A stretch of 64,000 bases of DNA, from IMG/VR virus record IMGVR_UViG_3300032288_004964, positions 248,001 through 312,000 of that record, one strand, 5' to 3'. Made by a program: the position numbers and the translations under genes. The number at the start of each line of letters is the position of its first letter. The stretch's first letter is position 1. The notes under the pieces were generated by a model. It ran no database searches. It was not told the DNA's origin and was given only the letters and a program-made list of their open reading frames with translations. Shown piece by piece: positions 6,407 through 35,133 of this stretch.

Positions 6407-6502
6407 TGCGGGGTAGAGAAGTGGTCAACTCGCTAGGCTCATTTTAGACTATCTAATGAAGAAATAACCTAGAGATCACAGGTTCGAATCCTGTCCCCGC
6501 TA
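6407..6502 (+). tRNA. Initiator-type tRNA-Met(CAT) with 23-nt insertion in the anticodon loop
   Basis: TGCGGGG/CCCCGCT acceptor with 1:72 mismatch; CTAGG-CTCAT[23 nt]AA-CCTAG; GGTTCGAATCC. Confidence 0.8.
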
Positions 6503-6590
6503 CAAAAAGGAAGATTTGAAACCCAACAAAAAAAGATTATATAAACGGGGTTCTTTTGAAATTCATTTCTTCTGAAGAATTAAAAAAATA

Positions 6591-6656: not shown

Positions 6657-6737
6657 ATGAACACAACTACTAACATATTGTCTTATTATTATGAGGAGAA
6701 AAACCCTTCTATCAGACAAGTATTGTTTGTGTTGTAA
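6657..6737 (+). CDS. Attenuator leader peptide 1 (Tyr/Glu sensor) MNTTTNILSYYYEEKNPSIRQVLFVL
   Basis: TAT TAT TAT GAG GAG run; followed by a terminator and Tyr/Glu tRNAs. Confidence 0.85.
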   Translation: MNTTTNILSYYYEEKNPSIRQVLFVL

Positions 6738-6758
6738 TTATTATTATAATATTAAATG

Positions 6759-6795
6759 AAACCCAGTCTGATTATCAGACTGGGTTTTTTGTTTT
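6759..6795 (+). terminator. Attenuator terminator 1
   Basis: aaacccagtctga-tta-tcagactgggttt plus U tract; ATCAGAC at 6711-6717 in the leader is complementary to the 5' arm. Confidence 0.85.
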
Positions 6796-6815
6796 ATATA
6801 TGTTCTTTGAAAATT

Positions 6816-6906
6816 GGGAGTATAACGTCAGCGGAATGTAAGCCGCCCCTCGTAAATATATGGCGTATGGCTTGAGGTAACTAGTGTTCGAATCCTGGTA
6901 CTCCCA
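6816..6906 (+). tRNA. Atypical tRNA-Tyr-like gene (irregular anticodon arm containing GTA)
   Basis: GGGAGTA/TACTCCC acceptor identical to tRNA-Tyr at 7660; TTCGAATCC T-loop. Confidence 0.5.
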
Positions 6907-6992: not shown

Positions 6993-7078
6993 GCTACGGT
7001 ATGCAAACCGGAATAAGCGACCAGACTTTCAATCTGGACATCGAAAGATGTGTGCGGGTTCGAGCCCCGTCCGTAGTA
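6993..7078 (+). tRNA. tRNA with TTC (Glu) anticodon and long variable arm
   Basis: ccaga-CTTTCAA-tctgg; acatc-gaaa-gatgt V-arm; A73. Confidence 0.8.
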
Positions 7079-7081
7079 CAA

Positions 7082-7223
7082 AAATATCAGGAGTACCTGT
7101 CGTAGAAAGTTAATCACTTTCCCTGATATTTATAAAACTCAATGAAGTAAGTGACTTTAGGTAGTACCGACAGGAGGGTGAATTTGATTAAGTTCTTTGG
7201 GGTTCGAATCCCACCATTGAGTT
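7082..7223 (+). ncRNA. Hairpin plus tRNA-like element (acceptor stem and T-arm) with potential mutual pairing
   Basis: actcaatg/cattgagt stem; GGTTCGAATCC; cctgtcg(7096)/cgacagg(7168) complementarity. Confidence 0.45.
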
Positions 7224-7228
7224 GTTTT

Positions 7229-7541: not shown

Positions 7542-7578
7542 ACTTTTTTATTTATCTTTGTAAAACAAATATAAAAAT

Positions 7579-8476: not shown

Positions 8477-8560
8477 ATGAAAAATTTACATAACATATCA
8501 ATAGCGATTATAGCGGGCGGCGCGGGGAGCGACTGTCATTGGCTGAGTTATGTGTTGTAA
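8477..8560 (+). CDS. Attenuator leader peptide 2 (Ile/Ala/Gly sensor) MKNLHNISIAIIAGGAGSDCHWLSYVL
   Basis: ATA/GCG/GGC/GGG codon run; followed by a terminator and Ile/Gly/Ala tRNAs. Confidence 0.85.
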   Translation: MKNLHNISIAIIAGGAGSDCHWLSYVL

Positions 8561-8587
8561 ATAATAAATATATTTATAATAATATTG

Positions 8588-8618
8588 AAACCCAGTCACA
8601 AAATGACTGGGTTTTTTT
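8588..8618 (+). terminator. Attenuator terminator 2
   Basis: aaacccagtca-caaaa-tgactgggttt plus U tract; tggctgagtt (8540-8549) can pair with the 5' arm. Confidence 0.85.
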
Positions 8619-9133: not shown

Positions 9134-9146
9134 CAAATAATGTAAT

Positions 9147-9222
9147 GGGGTTACATGTACCAAGGCTTAGGCGAGACTGCTTTGCAAGCAATCTGTGGTG
9201 GGTTCGATTCCCACTAGCTCCA
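9147..9222 (+). tRNA. tRNA-Ala(TGC)
   Basis: TTTGCAA loop; G3.U70 pair; atypical D arm. Confidence 0.75.
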
Positions 9223-9234
9223 CAAAAAAAACAA

Positions 9235-13890: not shown

Positions 13891-14001
13891 ATGACAACAA
13901 TTAATTTAAATATGAACATGAATACACTGACAGTGGTGAATAATACGTTATGTATTAGACCTTGTGAGGGTTTTGATCTATTTAAAGGATTTGTCAATTA
14001 A
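13891..14001 (+). CDS. Attenuator leader peptide 3 MTTINLNMNMNTLTVVNNTLCIRPCEGFDLFKGFVN
   Basis: First 23 codons use only M,T,I,N,L,V,C,R, the amino acids of the downstream tRNA cluster. Confidence 0.85.
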   Translation: MTTINLNMNMNTLTVVNNTLCIRPCEGFDLFKGFVN

Positions 14002-14029
14002 TGTAACAAATTTTTAATAAAAGATACTC

Positions 14030-14062
14030 AAAACCCTCAGTCAAAAACTGAGGGTTTTTTTA
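14030..14062 (+). terminator. Attenuator terminator 3
   Basis: aaaaccctcagt-caaaa-actgagggtttt; perfect 12-bp antiterminator tgagggttttga(13965)/tcaaaaccctca(14028). Confidence 0.9.
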
Positions 14063-14148: not shown

Positions 14149-14164
14149 CAAAAAGAAATAAAAA

Positions 14165-14243
14165 CGGTGCGTACCGAGCCACACTGATAATGTGGATATT
14201 CGTAATGGTGTTGCAAATGTAGGTTCAAATCCTATCGTACCGA
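14165..14243 (+). tRNA. D-armless tRNA-like gene with GAT (Ile) anticodon and long variable region
   Basis: cggtgcg/cgtaccg; ccaca-CTGATAA-tgtgg; GGTTCAAATCC. Confidence 0.55.
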
Positions 14244-14249
14244 CAAAAT

Positions 14250-14500: not shown

Positions 14501-14586
14501 TACTGTGTTGCCGTAGTGGCCGAACGGTCCAGACTGTTAATCTGGTGACGAATAGTCCAACGTAGGTTCGAATCCTACCACAGTAG
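14501..14586 (+). tRNA. tRNA-Asn(GTT) with long variable arm
   Basis: ccaga-CTGTTAA-tctgg; G73. Confidence 0.8.
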
Positions 14587-14591
14587 CAAAA

Positions 14592-14917: not shown

Positions 14918-14922
14918 CAAAT

Positions 14923-15068
14923 CGGTAGGACCCTATATTCTGTGGTAACTTCTAGAGAAGCCACAAGATGAATCGGTCTGGGTTAAAAACCAAACTTGGT
15001 TATTTGATATTCTAGAAATCATCATTTAATTAAGATTGGGAAGGTAGGTTCGAATCCTACCCTACTGT
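14923..15068 (+). ncRNA. 146-nt tRNA-like RNA (acceptor stem and T-arm enclosing a multi-hairpin core)
   Basis: cggtagg/cctactg; gtagg-TTCGAAT-cctac; no recognisable anticodon arm. Confidence 0.5.
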
Positions 15069-15075
15069 CAAATAT

Positions 15076-15449: not shown

Positions 15450-15521
15450 TGCGATATAGCTTAATGGAAGAGCGGCTCCAGACATAGGGAGTTAGTCTTG
15501 GTTCGATTCCAGGTATCGCGA
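15450..15521 (+). tRNA. tRNA-Met-like with 8-nt anticodon loop (AGA-CAT-AG)
   Basis: gctcc-AGACATAG-ggagt; normal D and T arms. Confidence 0.6.
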
Positions 15522-15526
15522 CAAAT

Positions 15527-22820: not shown

Positions 22821-22987
22821 AAAATCTACCTTATATTTGTGAAACAATTGGGATGGGAAACGATTCAGATACAAGTCTCAATTTTTTTTTACAAAAATAA
22901 TTTGGCAGATATAAAACTTTTTTCTATATTTGTATAAAATAAGAACAAATAACAAAAAGAGAGAATAACTTTATAATATATACTGAA

Positions 22988-23086
22988 ATGAAAAACTTAA
23001 ACTTAAATATCGTTAACCCGCAACCTCAAGTTGTAATCGATCAGGATCCTGATACGATAGGGGCTAACTATGTGGTTTTAAGTTAA
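22988..23086 (+). CDS. Attenuator leader peptide 4 (Pro/Gln/Asp sensor) MKNLNLNIVNPQPQVVIDQDPDTIGANYVVLS
   Basis: PQPQ..DQDPD run; followed by a terminator and Asp/Pro/Gln tRNAs. Confidence 0.85.
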   Translation: MKNLNLNIVNPQPQVVIDQDPDTIGANYVVLS

Positions 23087-23110
23087 AGAATAATATTAAC
23101 TATGAAACGT

Positions 23111-23150
23111 AACCCAGTTAGTCGAAAGATTAACTGGGTTTTTTGTTTTT
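23111..23150 (+). terminator. Attenuator terminator 4
   Basis: aacccagttagtc-gaaa-gattaactgggtt plus U tract; ggctaact (23062-23069) pairs with agttagtc. Confidence 0.85.
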
Positions 23151-23223: not shown

Positions 23224-23297
23224 GGTTCGTTAGTAGAGTTGGTTACAATATCGCACTGTCACTGCGAAGGTCACGGGTTCGAATCCCGTACGAACCG
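23224..23297 (+). tRNA. tRNA-Asp(GTC)
   Basis: tcgca-CTGTCAC-tgcga. Confidence 0.9.
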
Positions 23298-23302
23298 CAA
23301 AA

Positions 23303-23374
23303 GGTCTTGTCGTCCAATGGTAGGATAACCCGTTGTCTGCGGGAAGGTTGTGGGTTCGAATCCCATCAGGACCG
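23303..23374 (+). tRNA. tRNA-Asp(GTC)
   Basis: cccg-TTGTCTG-cggg; G73. Confidence 0.8.
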
Positions 23375-23383
23375 CTAAAATTT

Positions 23384-23456
23384 CGGGGTGTAGCGCAGTT
23401 GGTAGCGCGCCTGGTTTGGGACCAGGAGGTCGTCAGTTCGAGCCTGGCCACTCCGA
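23384..23456 (+). tRNA. tRNA-Pro(TGG)
   Basis: cctgg-TTTGGGA-ccagg. Confidence 0.9.
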
Positions 23457-23469
23457 CAAAAAATTAAAA

Positions 23470-23554
23470 CGAGATGTAGCCTAGAGGTTTCCGTATGGAT
23501 AAAGGCACTTGGTTTGGGACCAAGACGACGCAGGTTCGAATCCTGCCATCTCGA
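23470..23554 (+). tRNA. tRNA-Pro(TGG) with D-loop hairpin insertion
   Basis: cttgg-TTTGGGA-ccaag; tcc-gtat-gga in the D-loop. Confidence 0.85.
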
Positions 23555-23585
23555 CAAAGAAAAAAAATATTAATAAATAGAAATT

Positions 23586-23639
23586 ATGAGAACAACAACA
23601 CAATACCAACAACAACAACAAATTAATCCAACAGATTGA
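23586..23639 (+). CDS. Attenuator leader peptide 5 (Gln sensor) MRTTTQYQQQQQINPTD
   Basis: Six CAA codons; followed by a terminator, two tRNA-Gln and glnS. Confidence 0.9.
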   Translation: MRTTTQYQQQQQINPTD

Positions 23640-23667
23640 TAATGGTATCGTATTGTTTAAACTTTAC

Positions 23668-23702
23668 AAACCCTACTCAATCTGATTGAGTAGGGTTTTT
23701 TT
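23668..23702 (+). terminator. Attenuator terminator 5
   Basis: aaaccctactcaat-ctg-attgagtagggttt plus U tract; cagattga(23632)/tcaatctg(23677) antiterminator. Confidence 0.9.
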
Positions 23703-23704
23703 AT

Positions 23705-23778
23705 TGTCCGGTGGCGAAATTGGTAGACGCACTAAGCTTTGACCTTAGTTTTTGTAGGTTCGAACCCTACCCGGACAG
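23705..23778 (+). tRNA. tRNA-Gln(TTG)
   Basis: ctaag-CTTTGAC-cttag. Confidence 0.85.
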
Positions 23779-23785
23779 CAACAAT

Positions 23786-23857
23786 TGGAAAATAGTATAA
23801 TGGTTATTATTTCTGACTTTGAATCAGAAGATACAGGTTCGATCCCTGTTTTTCCAA
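23786..23857 (+). tRNA. tRNA-Gln(TTG)
   Basis: tctga-CTTTGAA-tcaga. Confidence 0.85.
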
Positions 23858-23876
23858 CTAAAAAAATATAAAAATT

Positions 23877-25511
23877 ATGAATTTCATAGAAGAAAAAATA
23901 TTAGAAAAAGGAAATCTCGATAAGTTAAAACTTCGTTTTCCACCAGAACCAAATGGGGCTATACTAAACGATGGTAGAGTTGTCGGTGGTCTTCACTTAG
24001 GACATGCTAAATCCATTATACTAAATTTTGGATTAGCAGAAAAGTATAATGCTACATGTGTGTTAAGGTTTGATGATACAAATCCAACTACTGAAAGAAA
24101 AGAGTTTGTAGATTCAATGATTGAGGATATCAAATGGCTTGGTTATACTCCAAGTGAAATCAGATACACATCTGATTATTTTGATTTTCTTTATGAATGT
24201 GCTGTTACTTTAATTAAGAAAGGATTAGCTTATGTTGATGATTCAACATCTGAAGAAATTGCTAACTTAAAAGGAACTCCAACTTCAGTTGGTAAAGACT
24301 CACCTTATAAATCTAGAAGTATAGAAGAAAACTTAGACTTATTTAATAGAATGAGATTAGGTGAATTCTATGAAGGTTCTAAAATCTTGAGAGCCAATAT
24401 TGATATGACTTCTCCTAATATGATTTTAAGAGATCCGGTTCTTTACAGAATAATATCTAAGTCACATCACAGAACTGGTGATACTTGGAAGATTTATCCA
24501 ATGTATGACTTTGCTCATCCACTTTCAGATTATAAAGAAGGTATCACTGATTCCCTTTGTACTTTAGAATTTGAAGTTCATAGACCTTTATATATGTGGG
24601 TCTTAGAAAATTGTGATTTAGAAAATTCTTTACCAGAAGAAACTGAGTTTGCTCGTTTGAACATTGACTATACGGTTATGTCAAAGAGAAAACTAAAAAG
24701 ATTAGTTGAAGAAGGATTTGTTGATGGGTGGAATGATCCAAGAATGCCAACTATTTCTGGTTTAAGAAGAAGAGGTTTTACTCCAAACGCTATTAAAGAT
24801 TTCTGCGATAGAATTTCTGTTACCAGAAAAGAATCAGTTGTTTCTTATTTGCTTTTAGAAGAATGTTTAAGAACTGATTTGAATATAGTTACCAATAGAT
24901 TAATGGGTGTTATGGATCCAGTTAAGTTAGTTATTACTAATTGGGATAGCGGAACTGAAATGGTTGAAGTTGAAAATAATCCTGGCGATGAAAGTGCTGG
25001 AGTGAGAATGATTCCTTTTAGTGGTGAATTATTTATTGAAAGAGAAGATTTCAGAGAAGAAGCCAATAAAAAATTTCATAGATTGAAATTAGGTGGAGAA
25101 GTAAGACTAAAAGGAGCTTATGTTATTATGGCTAACGAAGTTATCAAAGATGAATTTGGGGAAATCACTGAGATCAGATGTACTTATGATCCTTTAACAA
25201 GATCGGGTATGACTTTTGAAAGAAAGATTAAAGGAACTATTCACTGGGTATCTGCTGAACACGGAGTTAGAATGGATGTAAATGAATATGATAGATTGTT
25301 CAATGATGAATCACCAGATAAAAATGAAGATGATTTTATCAATTATATCAACCCAGATTCACTTATAATTAATGATAAGGCAATCTTTGAACCTCACGTT
25401 TTAAACGTCAAGGCACCAGTTCAAATGATGAGAAAGGGGTATTATATTTTAGATACTGACGGTAAAAGTTTCAATAAAACGGTAAGTTTGAAAGAAGGTT
25501 GGGTAGGTTAA
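23877..25511 (+). CDS. glnS: Glutaminyl-tRNA synthetase
   Basis: RFPPEPNG, HLGH, RFDDTNP, YPMYDFAH, MSKRK, GWNDPRMPT. Confidence 0.95.
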   Translation: MNFIEEKILEKGNLDKLKLRFPPEPNGAILNDGRVVGGLHLGHAKSIILNFGLAEKYNATCVLRFDDTNPTTERKEFVDSMIEDIKWLGYTPSEIRYTSDYFDFLYECAVTLIKKGLAYVDDSTSEEIANLKGTPTSVGKDSPYKSRSIEENLDLFNRMRLGEFYEGSKILRANIDMTSPNMILRDPVLYRIISKSHHRTGDTWKIYPMYDFAHPLSDYKEGITDSLCTLEFEVHRPLYMWVLENCDLENSLPEETEFARLNIDYTVMSKRKLKRLVEEGFVDGWNDPRMPTISGLRRRGFTPNAIKDFCDRISVTRKESVVSYLLLEECLRTDLNIVTNRLMGVMDPVKLVITNWDSGTEMVEVENNPGDESAGVRMIPFSGELFIEREDFREEANKKFHRLKLGGEVRLKGAYVIMANEVIKDEFGEITEIRCTYDPLTRSGMTFERKIKGTIHWVSAEHGVRMDVNEYDRLFNDESPDKNEDDFINYINPDSLIINDKAIFEPHVLNVKAPVQMMRKGYYILDTDGKSFNKTVSLKEGWVG

Positions 25512-33610: not shown

Positions 33611-33695
33611 GAGGAAGTTCCAGAGTGGTCAAATGGGGCTGTGTAGTAACACGGCTGACTTTTAGTCTTCAGAGGTTCAAATCCTTTCTTTCTCA
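33611..33695 (+). tRNA. tRNA-Tyr-like with 8-nt anticodon loop
   Basis: gctgt-GTAGTAAC-acggc; long V-arm; A73. Confidence 0.6.
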
Positions 33696-33785
33696 CAAAA
33701 AATATTTTGAAAAACATTTGGTAGAATAAAAAAAAGTTTCTATCTTTGTAAAACAAAATTAAAAGGTATTATATAAAAAACATAT

Positions 33786-33979: not shown

Positions 33980-34840
33980 TTACAGAAATAATGACTTCGG
34001 TCATTAAAGTAAGTAGGGCGGCTTATAGTCCATAAATAATCTCTGAAAGGAGGATAAAGTGATCACAAATGCTAAATGTGATTGCGGCTTGACCGAAAGG
34101 TTGAGCTCGGGTAAGCGAGTGGAATACCATTATTCCTGAGTAGCCGAGGGTAACACTGTAGGCGAAATGGTTTAGTGATTAGGCGATGTAGATCGTCTGA
34201 TTGACTTCGGAAGAAGAATAGGAATAATCCATAGGAATCTTTGCAAGAAGTGGTGACCCACCAGTTATCATCATTGCGAATTCCAACTTGAGAGGTATCT
34301 CAAAGTCGAAAGACAATTTAGTGTACAGGTGGTGCTGTTACTAAACACTAAACTGACTACCAAGTCGGTGACCTTGCTAAGGTGAGGTCTGGTGAAGATA
34401 TCTTAAAGAGTTGTGATGGAGGCATCACACGGAGTAGTCTAGTATTCTTGAGGCCAAAAGCTTTGGGAACTAAGAGATAACCACTACTTCGACAAAATCT
34501 ACAGCACTAAAATTTACTTTTTGACGTAAAAATTAAAACTTAAATCGAAAGTGTTATCTAGTTACTGATAGAAAGGTACCTACTTAGTTATGGGTTGTCC
34601 ATAGCCACATAAGTCCGAAAGACTGGTGTGATTTTACCGAAAAGCTTATAGGGGGTCGAATCCCGAACTAGCCTGCGAGGGTTGGATAAGTAGAGTAAGT
34701 AGAGAGTATTCAGTGACTCAAGGGGTGGTTAGTCTAACTAACCGGTACTGACAAGATACCATTCAAAAGATGGTGGATAGATTTGGGAATACATAATCCA
34801 AACAAAGACTTGTCATATTAAGATGTAATCTCAGTCTTTT
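33980..34840 (+). ncRNA. Large structured ncRNA, GOLLD-like
   Basis: ~850 nt with no ORF in the track, higher GC than flanks, many GNRA/UUCG-capped hairpins, flanked by tRNAs; family name is from size and context only. Confidence 0.6.
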
Positions 34841-34844
34841 ATTT

Positions 34845-34920
34845 GGTCAGTTCGTCTAGCGGCATTCAGGACGGATATCTATTCAGATATCAAACATTGG
34901 TTCGAATCCAATACTGACTA
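34845..34920 (+). tRNA. tRNA-Glu-like with 8-nt anticodon loop
   Basis: gatat-CTATTCAG-atatc; normal D and T arms. Confidence 0.6.
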
Positions 34921-34999
34921 CTAAGTTTTCGTAGTGGTTAACTTACTCCGAAAGGGGGGTCTGTCAATGACAGTGTGACTACCTCAAAGTCACACATAT

Positions 35000-35099
35000 G
35001 GCCCGTTAGTCTACAGGACTCGCAAGAGAATCAGATTTATCTGATTAGGACGGTCAACTTTTCGGTTGATAGATATTGGTTCGAATCCAATACGGGCTA
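35000..35099 (+). tRNA. tRNA-Glu-like with 8-nt anticodon loop and two hairpins in the D-loop
   Basis: gtcaa-CTTTTCGG-ttgat; nested in a 10-bp stem 34925/35124. Confidence 0.55.
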
Positions 35100-35133
35100 C
35101 AGAAATCACGGTCTTTTGACCGTCTACGAAAAC

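Follow-up and report, generated by a model that had tools for sequence, protein, structure and literature searches.

Overall organization of the locus

The region examined lies in a 64 kb stretch of huge-phage DNA (IMG/VR record IMGVR_UViG_3300032288_004964, positions 248,001 to 312,000; hereafter the window) and contains, on the + strand, a short glutamine-rich open reading frame, an intrinsic terminator, two tRNA-Gln(UUG) genes and an intact glnS gene (Table 1). The short ORF consists of 17 codons plus a stop codon and encodes MRTTTQYQQQQQINPTD*, with one CAA codon at 23601–03 and five consecutive CAA codons at 23607–21. Glutamine accounts for 2.4% of the codons in the long ORFs of the window, giving P(≥6 of 16) = 1.3e-6, and the run at 23607 is the only stretch of four or more consecutive CAA/CAG in either strand of the 64 kb; chance is thus excluded. 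CAA makes up 90% of the Gln codons in the long ORFs of the window and is the codon read by the downstream tRNA-Gln(UUG).

Table 1. Features of the Gln locus and of the region immediately upstream (positions in the window).
Feature	Position	Strand	Description
Promoter-like element	22901–22934	+	TTTG at 22901–04; −7 box TATATTTGTA at 22925–34
Attenuator 4	22988–23140	+	Leader ORF rich in Pro, Gln and Asp codons at 22988–23086; terminator at 23111–23140
tRNA-Asp ×2, Pro and Ser	23224–23555		Array preceded by attenuator 4
Gln leader ORF	23586–23639	+	ATG at 23586, TGA at 23637–23639
Outer 1:2 helix, 5′ strand	23594–23608		Thr/Gln/Tyr codons of the leader
Regulatory codon block	23601–23621	+	CAA, TAC, CAA ×5
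Region 1	23622–23628	+	AUUAAUC; pairs with GAUUGAU of region 2 (inner anti-antiterminator hairpin)
Region 2 (antiterminator strand)	23632–23646	+	CAGATTGAtaatGGT; contains the leader stop codon; pairs with 23670–84
Outer 1:2 helix, 3′ strand	23643–23657	+	Includes the conserved UAUUGU motif
Intrinsic terminator	23668–23702	+	14 bp stem at 23668–98 (5′ arm 23668–81, loop CTG, 3′ arm 23685–98); seven T at 23696–702
tRNA-Gln(UUG), copy 1	23705–23779	+	Starts 2 nt after the T-run
tRNA-Gln(UUG), copy 2	23786–23858	+	
glnS	23877–25511	+	Glutamine–tRNA ligase, 544 aa; starts 18 nt after the second tRNA

Both tRNA-Gln genes were identified by ARAGORN and by Rfam (59.5 and 68.4 bits). The glnS product scores 645 bits against the TIGR00440 glnS model (cutoff 425.8) and matches Pfam tRNA-synt_1c (3e-93), and the HIGH (HLGH) and KMSKS-like (VMSKR) motifs are present. 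No + strand terminator-like site was found between 23699 and 25511.

The nearest upstream promoter-like element precedes attenuator 4 and matches the Bacteroidetes sigma-ABfr consensus TAnnTTTG/−33 TTTG (PMC7366714). The box occurs 12 times exactly in the window, always on the + strand, with 65 one-mismatch hits compared with 31.6 expected. It probably drives attenuator 4, the Asp/Pro/Ser tRNAs and then the Gln unit, as the Gln leader begins only 31 nt after tRNA-Ser and no TAnnTTTG box lies between 22935 and 25482. The leader of attenuator 4 carries three Gln codons where 0.8 are expected, which fits Gln tRNAs lying further down the same transcript. The first-pass annotation, which had recognized the six CAA codons, the pairing at the stop codon and the absence of an intervening terminator, is correct in each of these sequence statements, but its description of the locus as a self-contained module does not hold in this window, where the unit has no promoter box of its own and is probably read in series behind the Asp/Pro attenuator.

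Alternative structures of the leader RNA

The leader RNA is predicted to form the three alternative hairpins of a trp-type attenuator. The terminator (3:4) folds alone at −19.0 kcal/mol (z = −7.1). The segment CAGATTGA (23632–39) at the leader stop codon is the exact reverse complement of TCAATCTG (23677–84) in the 5′ arm of the terminator, and the pairing is longer than had been noted in the first-pass annotation, with CAGATTGA plus GGT pairing with TCAATCTG plus ACC (duplex −12.5 kcal/mol). RNA lacking the terminator 3′ arm folds into this antiterminator (2:3) helix at −13.6 kcal/mol (z = −3.9). A nested 1:2 anti-antiterminator hairpin, which was not noted in that annotation, forms in the pre-terminator RNA at −11.1 kcal/mol and completes the classical three-hairpin design, whereas the full RNA folds as 1:2 plus terminator at −30.1 kcal/mol (z = −5.8). 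The 2:3 helix (8 + 3 bp, about −13 kcal/mol) is weaker than the terminator and antitermination must therefore be kinetic, as in classical attenuators.

TATTGT or a near variant lies at the same position in all of the Gln leaders. It does not match the TAnnTTTG promoter box, and any transcript starting there would run straight into the terminator. The consensus elemental pause (G−10 Y−1 G+1) fits the motif in the window and in the related contigs L001, L002 and L010, but not in L011, L013 or L016. Folding shows that it is the 3′ strand of the outer 1:2 helix. No known cis-regulatory family of Rfam was found at gathering threshold, or at E ≤ 10 on the leader; the best hits in 23556–23710 score ≤25 bits against cutoffs of 39–102 (e.g. 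Thr_leader, 16 bits against 55; PyrG_leader, 22.3 bits against 65).

Conservation and covariation in related phages

The poly-Gln ORF, terminator and tRNA-Gln array recur in 15 related huge-phage contigs (numbered with the prefix L), with GlnRS identity down to 52%. An ATG-started ORF with a run of 4–7 Gln codons, followed by a terminator and 2–4 tRNA-Gln genes, is found in L001, L002, L004, L005, L007–L010, L013, L015, L016, L018 and L113, in which the GlnRS identity is 96–52%. The start codon, frame and stop codon are kept, CAA/CAG changes are synonymous only in this frame and the terminator is present in all relatives. All 14 terminator-preceded arrays made only of tRNA-Gln have such a leader, whereas none of the leaders before other arrays has a run of four or more Gln codons; this survey was used only for the presence or absence of Gln runs, as automatic selection of the short ORF gave a wrong frame or a truncated start in four units (window units a and c, L001 at 2215 and L019).

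The constant partner of the leader is the tRNA-Gln array. glnS follows in most relatives, sometimes after an inserted homing-endonuclease-like ORF or other same-strand ORFs. In L011, the same poly-Gln leader and terminator, with their own promoter-like box, directly precede an ORF and glnS with no tRNA, which links the leader to glnS itself. Several relatives have a promoter box 43–51 nt before the Gln leader. L012 has a mixed Asn/Gln leader further upstream, L019 has glnS behind a different tRNA array and L014 has no tRNAs within 2.5 kb. Other phage contigs with tRNA-Gln near glnS (L124, L128 and L130) have no leader, and some tRNA genes in the window (7553 and 33741) have a promoter box and no leader, such that the design is not obligatory.

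Region 2 covaries with the terminator 5′ arm. As a MAFFT alignment of the leader-to-terminator region placed the divergent loci out of structural register, it was not used for pair counting, and duplexes were instead predicted for each locus and compared between cognate and non-cognate pairs. Cognate duplexes average −13.4 kcal/mol, compared with −8.5 kcal/mol for non-cognate pairs (exact permutation over seven divergent classes, p = 0.0016). Fully different but complementary pairs are present in L009, L011, L015 and L113, and single compensatory changes are also observed (C:G in the window, G:C in L008 and U:A in L013). The nested 1:2 hairpin is predicted in the window and in 13 relatives folded in the same way, and the corresponding duplex test gives p = 0.0037. 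The relatives share ancestry and these p-values are therefore not free of phylogenetic dependence. Region 2 starts 9–13 nt after the last Gln codon in all 14 loci measured, about one ribosome leading edge, although the stop codon ranges from +18 to +36.

The leader is not inherited with the gene: 0 of 78 metagenomic cellular glnS loci and 0 of 78 named genomes, mostly Bacteroidota, have a QQQ short ORF or tRNA-Gln within 1.5 kb upstream.

Related modules in the window

Four other tRNA arrays in the window (units a–d) carry the same module, each with codons matching its own tRNAs. The true leader-to-array assignment is the best of all 120 permutations (p = 0.008). In leader c, all 22 codons after the ATG are readable by anticodons of its 12-tRNA array. 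The correspondence extends to the codon–anticodon level, for example ATA ×3 with tRNA-Ile(UAU), and TTA and CTG with Leu(UAA) and Leu(UAG).

Proposed mechanism

We consider it likely that the locus is a ribosome-mediated (leader-peptide) transcription attenuator of the trp/his/pheST type that gates the two tRNA-Gln(UUG) genes and the glutaminyl-tRNA synthetase of the phage, although regulation is inferred entirely from sequence, including translation of the ORF, coupling of transcription and translation, and the direction and size of the response. Transcription most likely starts at the promoter box at 22925 and passes through attenuator 4 and the Asp/Pro/Ser tRNAs, so that the output of the Gln unit would also depend on attenuator 4. 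When Gln-tRNA(UUG) is plentiful, the ribosome would run through the five CAA codons to the UGA and sit on region 2, the terminator would form and RNA polymerase would stop two bases before the first tRNA gene. When charged tRNA-Gln(UUG) is short relative to demand, the ribosome would stall on the CAA run with its leading edge, about 9–10 nt past the A-site codon, covering region 1 but leaving region 2 free to pair with the terminator 5′ arm, and transcription would continue into tRNA-Gln ×2 and glnS. Without translation, the nested 1:2 hairpin would sequester region 2 and termination would be the default. In this model the product, charged tRNA-Gln, is the molecule that is sensed, giving a direct negative-feedback supply loop. 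The short distance from the T-run to the first tRNA and the lack of an internal promoter box suggest that the Gln genes can only be expressed by reading through this terminator. Two features fit less easily: published theory predicts higher sensitivity when the regulatory codon type is used rarely (PMC1183508), whereas CAA is the common Gln codon of the phage, and glnS mRNA would have to be released from a tRNA-containing precursor.

An alternative, which we regard as unlikely, is that the same elements respond to the glutamine (nitrogen) status of the host cell rather than to the supply of the tRNA species, with the phage raising tRNA-Gln and GlnRS to compete for scarce glutamine. Classical attenuators respond to charged tRNA, which falls when the amino acid is scarce (PMC1183508), and glnS lies in the operon. 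However, the other leaders match their arrays at the codon–anticodon level and not just at the amino-acid level, and all five relatives with a tRNA-Gln(CUG) in the array right after the terminator, plus L015 where it lies further downstream, have at least one CAG in the leader. Furthermore, making more tRNA does not relieve an amino-acid shortage.

It is very unlikely that the hairpin is simply the constitutive terminator or insulator of the upstream Asp/Pro/Ser tRNA operon, with an incidental poly-Gln ORF and with the Gln genes expressed by leaky readthrough or from an unrecognized promoter. The proximity of the leader to tRNA-Ser and the absence of its own promoter box would be consistent with this, but in L008, L010, L018 and L011 the Gln leader has its own promoter-like box and is not preceded by a tRNA operon, the only Gln-codon run in the window lies exactly here, the ORF, the run and the region 2 complementarity are conserved and covary, and the start of the tRNA 2 nt after the T-run leaves no room for a promoter. 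A translation-independent switch, in which the CAA run or the leader structure binds tRNA-Gln (T-box-like) or a protein, is similarly improbable. The CAA repeats are complementary to the UUG anticodon and T-boxes control aaRS genes in Firmicutes (PMC1262725, PMC2494555), but no T-box was detected at gathering threshold in the window or at E ≤ 10 in 23556–23710, the reading frame is conserved, the 9–13 nt offset fits a ribosome footprint and the multi-amino-acid leaders of units a–d cannot be single specifier codons. A functional micropeptide unrelated to the hairpin is the least likely reading despite conservation of the ORF in 15 relatives, since only the Gln run is conserved at the peptide level, lengths range from 15 to 28 aa, the C-termini differ, and the conserved I-N and T-D codons coincide with the RNA pairing strands AUUAAUC and GAUUGA.

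Comparison with known systems and implications

The E. coli pheST attenuator, with a Phe-rich leader before phenylalanyl-tRNA synthetase, and the candidate trpS/leuS attenuators of Streptomyces likewise combine a leader peptide rich in the cognate codons, an antiterminator/terminator choice and an aminoacyl-tRNA synthetase gene as the regulated product (PMC11802643; PMC1262725). Here, the first regulated genes would be tRNA genes, the amino acid is Gln, the element is in a phage with a predicted Bacteroidetes host and there is no sequence homology; cellular glnS genes closest to the phage enzyme lack any such leader. The trp and his biosynthetic operon attenuators (Yanofsky model) share the four-region logic with 1:2, 2:3 and 3:4 helices, a stop codon at region 2 and a run of regulatory codons just 5′ of region 1 (PMC1183508), but their output is biosynthetic enzymes rather than tRNAs plus a synthetase. 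In the window, moreover, the module is reiterated at least five times in 64 kb, with codon sets tailored to each tRNA array and with two modules arranged in series. T-box riboswitches also sense the charging state of a specific tRNA and control aaRS genes by a terminator/antiterminator choice, but bind uncharged tRNA directly and need no translation.

The nearest GenBank relatives of the window are the 634,780 bp and 642,428 bp 'uncultured phage' assemblies. The four largest curated genomes of Al-Shayeb et al. (2020) are 634, 636, 642 and 735 kb; those above 634 kb fall in the largest clade of that study and are predicted to replicate in Bacteroidetes, and its huge phages carry up to 67 tRNAs and up to 15 synthetases per genome (PMC7162821). 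That paper does not mention attenuation, and no report of leader-peptide control of tRNA genes or of attenuators in huge phages was found in a literature search that was not exhaustive.

It is somewhat more likely than not that huge phages of this clade run a modular, codon-resolved system that senses tRNA demand, in which each tRNA array is gated by its own leader ORF listing the codons read by the tRNAs of that array, with the Gln unit as the single-codon case. The phage would then express each set of tRNAs, and here GlnRS too, only when the infected cell's pool of that charged tRNA cannot keep up, which could happen because of AT-rich phage codon usage or because of host tRNA depletion or cleavage.

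Phage tRNA genes are usually treated as constitutive cargo that compensates for codon-usage mismatch or for host tRNA loss. If the present reading is right, a phage regulates its tRNA genes one codon family at a time, with the ribosome acting as the sensor and the charged tRNA as both the signal and the product. This would extend leader-peptide attenuation from amino-acid biosynthesis and a few synthetase genes to tRNA genes themselves, and would show that the mechanism operates in phages of Bacteroidetes, where post-transcriptional control is little known. The five leaders in 64 kb, each with a different codon set, would offer a compact family of natural, codon-specific sensors and would also serve as a built-in annotation of which codons are decoded by the many atypical tRNA genes of huge phages, giving a handle for assigning their function.

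Genomic context

The GlnRS region of the window is 100% identical to IMG/VR contig IMGVR_UViG_3300032288_004964, which is 385 kb in length. Its nearest GenBank relatives are two 'uncultured phage' assemblies of 634,780 and 642,428 bp, with 72-75% nucleotide identity. These sizes match two of the four largest curated genomes of Al-Shayeb et al. 2020, in which the genomes above 634 kb fall in the largest clade and are predicted to replicate in Bacteroidetes (PMC7162821). The window itself points the same way. A box TAT[AC]TTTGTA, often with TTTG about 20 nt upstream, occurs 18 times, always on the + strand and in front of ORFs, leaders or tRNAs, and matches the Bacteroidetes sigma-ABfr consensus (PMC7366714). 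Start codons are preceded by A-rich tracts rather than by Shine-Dalgarno sequences, and the closest cellular GlnRS sequences (52-57% identity) are mostly from Bacteroidota.

All of the elements described in the first-pass annotation, namely a short ORF with six CAA codons, a terminator, two tRNA-Gln(UUG) genes and glnS, are present. Their coordinates and those of the other features discussed here are summarized in the table. The synthetase is a bona fide GlnRS, with a TIGR00440 score of 645 bits against a cutoff of 426 and a Pfam E-value of 3e-93. It carries a ten-residue insertion (AILNDGRVVG) immediately before the HIGH motif, which is also present in L010 but is absent from L004, L001, L007, L016 and a cellular homologue, L020 (L numbers denote the loci compared). 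Gln accounts for 2.4% of the codons in the long ORFs of the window, 90% of them CAA, so that six Gln in 16 codons has a probability of 1.3e-6. The run in the leader is the only stretch of four or more CAA/CAG codons on either strand of the window.

Coordinates of features in the window and in related loci
Feature	Sequence	Position	Strand	Remarks
Leader ORF	window	23586-23639		18 codons, six CAA
Run of CAA/CAG codons	window	23607 (start)		
Inner 1:2 stem, 5' strand	window	23622-28		AUUAAUC, codons right after the Gln run
Inner 1:2 stem, 3' strand	window	23634-40		GAUUGAU
Outer 1:2 stem, 5' strand	window	23594-608		5' codons of the leader
Outer 1:2 stem, 3' strand	window	23643-57		carries the conserved UAUUGU motif
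2:3 helix, 5' strand	window	23632-46		CAGAUUGA..GGU
2:3 helix, 3' strand	window	23670-84		ACC..UCAAUCUG
Intrinsic terminator	window	23668-23702		
tRNA-Gln(UUG)	window	23705-79		
tRNA-Gln(UUG)	window	23786-858		
glnS	window	23877-25511		
Insertion in GlnRS	window	23955-23984		glnS codons 27-36
Promoter box, exact	window	6615, 8452, 11716, 12343, 12553, 13826, 16281, 20342, 22925, 25967, 30364, 35183	+	TAT[AC]TTTGTA
Promoter box, variants	window	3907, 7553, 18633, 33474, 33741, 33920	+	
Other units of leader ORF plus terminator	window	6657-6788, 8477-8615, 13891-14058, 22988-23140		precede tRNA arrays
Other tRNA arrays preceded by a leader	window	about 6912, 8628, 14076, 23224 (starts)		
Atypical tRNA-like genes and stretches	window	6407-6503, 6993-7079, 14501-14587, 15450-15522, 33611-33696, 34845-34921; also ~6807-6900, ~7085-7225, ~9140-9225, ~14155-14245, ~14920-15070		
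GOLLD RNA	window	34430-34837	+	RF02032
tRNA-like genes on both sides of GOLLD	window	33611-96, 33786-862, 34845-921		
Possible intron-containing tRNA-Gln(CUG)	window	35000-35100		
GIY-YIG-like ORF	L015	1433-2209		between tRNA-Gln array and glnS
HNH-like ORF	L018	1611-2486		between tRNA-Gln array and glnS
Asn/Gln leader ORF	L012	578-664		upstream of tRNA-Asn x2
Aromatic-rich leader plus terminator	L015	4450-4608		precedes tRNA-Trp(CCA)

Predicted structures of the leader RNA

Folding predictions indicate that the leader RNA can adopt three mutually exclusive helices. RNA up to the terminator folds into a nested hairpin of -11.1 kcal/mol, which consists of an inner stem that pairs the codons right after the Gln run with GAUUGAU and an outer stem that pairs the 5' codons of the leader with the segment carrying the UAUUGU motif. 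RNA that includes the 5' arm but not the 3' arm of the terminator folds instead into the 2:3 helix, with an energy of -13.6 kcal/mol (z = -3.9). The full RNA folds into the 1:2 structure plus the terminator (-30.1 kcal/mol, z = -5.8), while the terminator alone gives -19.0 kcal/mol (z = -7.1). This arrangement is the 1:2, 2:3 and 3:4 design of the classical model (PMC1183508). The 2:3 helix is thermodynamically weaker than the terminator, so the choice between them must be kinetic, as in known attenuators. The element matches no Rfam family.

Comparison with related loci

Loci were collected through GlnRS, which makes the sampling unbiased with respect to the leader. Among them, 15 phage contigs with GlnRS identity from 96% down to 52% carry an ATG-started short ORF with a run of 4-7 Gln codons, followed by a terminator and, in all but L011, by 2-4 tRNA-Gln genes. 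The peptides differ in length (15-28 aa) and in sequence outside the Gln run, whereas CAA/CAG substitutions within the run are synonymous only in the leader frame. All five relatives with a tRNA-Gln(CUG) in the array right after the terminator, plus L015, in which it lies further downstream, have at least one CAG codon in the leader. In the window, a possible intron-containing tRNA-Gln(CUG) was called by ARAGORN with introns allowed, but neither by Rfam nor by ARAGORN without introns. In L012, a leader ORF that alternates Asn and Gln codons (..QNQYNQNQNWYQNYQ..) lies upstream of two tRNA-Asn genes, with two tRNA-Gln genes further down, and may be a combined Asn/Gln attenuator replacing the separate Gln unit.

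The antiterminator strand changes together with the 5' arm of the terminator. L009, L011, L015 and L113 have unrelated but mutually complementary sequences, and closer relatives show single compensatory or wobble changes (C:G in the window, G:C in L008 and U:A in L013). Cognate duplexes average -13.4 kcal/mol compared with -8.5 kcal/mol for non-cognate combinations, and exact permutation over seven divergent classes gives p = 0.0016; the inner 1:2 stem gives p = 0.0037. As the relatives are phylogenetically related, these p-values are indicative rather than exact. Region 2, the antiterminator strand, begins 9-13 nt after the last Gln codon in every locus measured, although the stop codon lies anywhere from +18 to +36. 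This distance is likely to be about the reach of the leading edge of a ribosome beyond its A-site codon, as judged from toeprint geometry, and a ribosome stalled on the last Gln codons would therefore cover region 1 and just spare region 2.

None of 78 metagenomic glnS loci at <=56% identity has a QQQ short ORF or a tRNA-Gln within 1.5 kb upstream, and the same is true of all 78 named bacterial genomes tested. We therefore conclude that the module is an invention of the phage lineage and did not come with the gene.

Genes downstream of the terminator

The first tRNA starts two bases after the T-run. No TAnnTTTG box lies between 22935 and 25482, and no + strand terminator lies between 23699 and the end of glnS. 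Thus, in the absence of transcript data, the Gln genes appear to be expressible only by reading through this terminator. In the window, L001, L002, L004 and L005 the leader follows directly on a tRNA of the upstream Asp/Pro array. The unit is therefore probably read in series behind the attenuator of that array (attenuator 4), the leader of which also contains three Gln codons where 0.8 are expected. In L008, L010, L018 and L011 the Gln leader has its own promoter-like box 43-51 nt upstream.

glnS lies at most 34 nt after the last tRNA-Gln in eleven loci. In the other five it lies behind inserted same-strand ORFs, which are homing-endonuclease-like in L015 (GIY-YIG-like) and L018 (HNH-like), as judged from visible motifs only. 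In L011, the leader and terminator precede a 149-aa ORF and glnS with no tRNA at all, which ties the Gln leader to the synthetase gene as well.

Leaders of other tRNA arrays

Four other tRNA arrays in the window are each preceded by a promoter box, a short ORF and a terminator with the same three-state folding, and the codon content of each leader matches its own array: YYYEE before the Tyr/Glu tRNAs, ATA x3 and Gly codons before Ile(UAU)/Gly, P, Q and D codons before Asp/Pro and, before the 12-tRNA array, a leader whose first 22 codons after the ATG are all readable by the anticodons of that array. The true assignment of leaders to arrays is the best of all 120 permutations at both the amino-acid and the codon-anticodon level (p = 0.008). 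The leaders share N-terminal patterns (MKNL.., M.TT..), which suggests that the modules are paralogous. An unbiased scan of all clade loci found a short ORF before every terminator that precedes a tRNA array. At the end of the L015 locus, a leader rich in aromatic codons (..FNCFWFPYYPF..) plus a terminator precedes tRNA-Trp(CCA). In contrast, the promoter boxes at 7553 and 33741 sit directly before tRNA genes with no leader, so some tRNA copies look unattenuated.

Many tRNA-like genes in the arrays are atypical. Some are called with 4-nt anticodons, some have long inserts or intron-like segments, and two 87-nt genes are called 'Glu' and 'Asn'. Additionally, several tRNA-like stretches ending in GGTTCGAATCC-type T-arms are called by neither ARAGORN nor Rfam. 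The leader codon lists might help to assign them. A full-length GOLLD RNA (270 bits, E = 7e-76) is flanked on both sides by tRNA-like genes.

Discussion

Attenuators before synthetase genes are known, as in pheST (PMC11802643) and in the candidate trpS/leuS elements of Streptomyces (PMC1262725). In the full-text literature searched, we found no report of leader-peptide attenuation of tRNA genes or of attenuators in huge phages; the element described here differs from these precedents in preceding tRNA genes and in being carried by a phage. Although its function is inferred entirely without transcript or ribosome data, the best explanation is a classical ribosome-mediated attenuator that senses charged tRNA-Gln(UUG) and feeds back on the genes for that tRNA and its synthetase.
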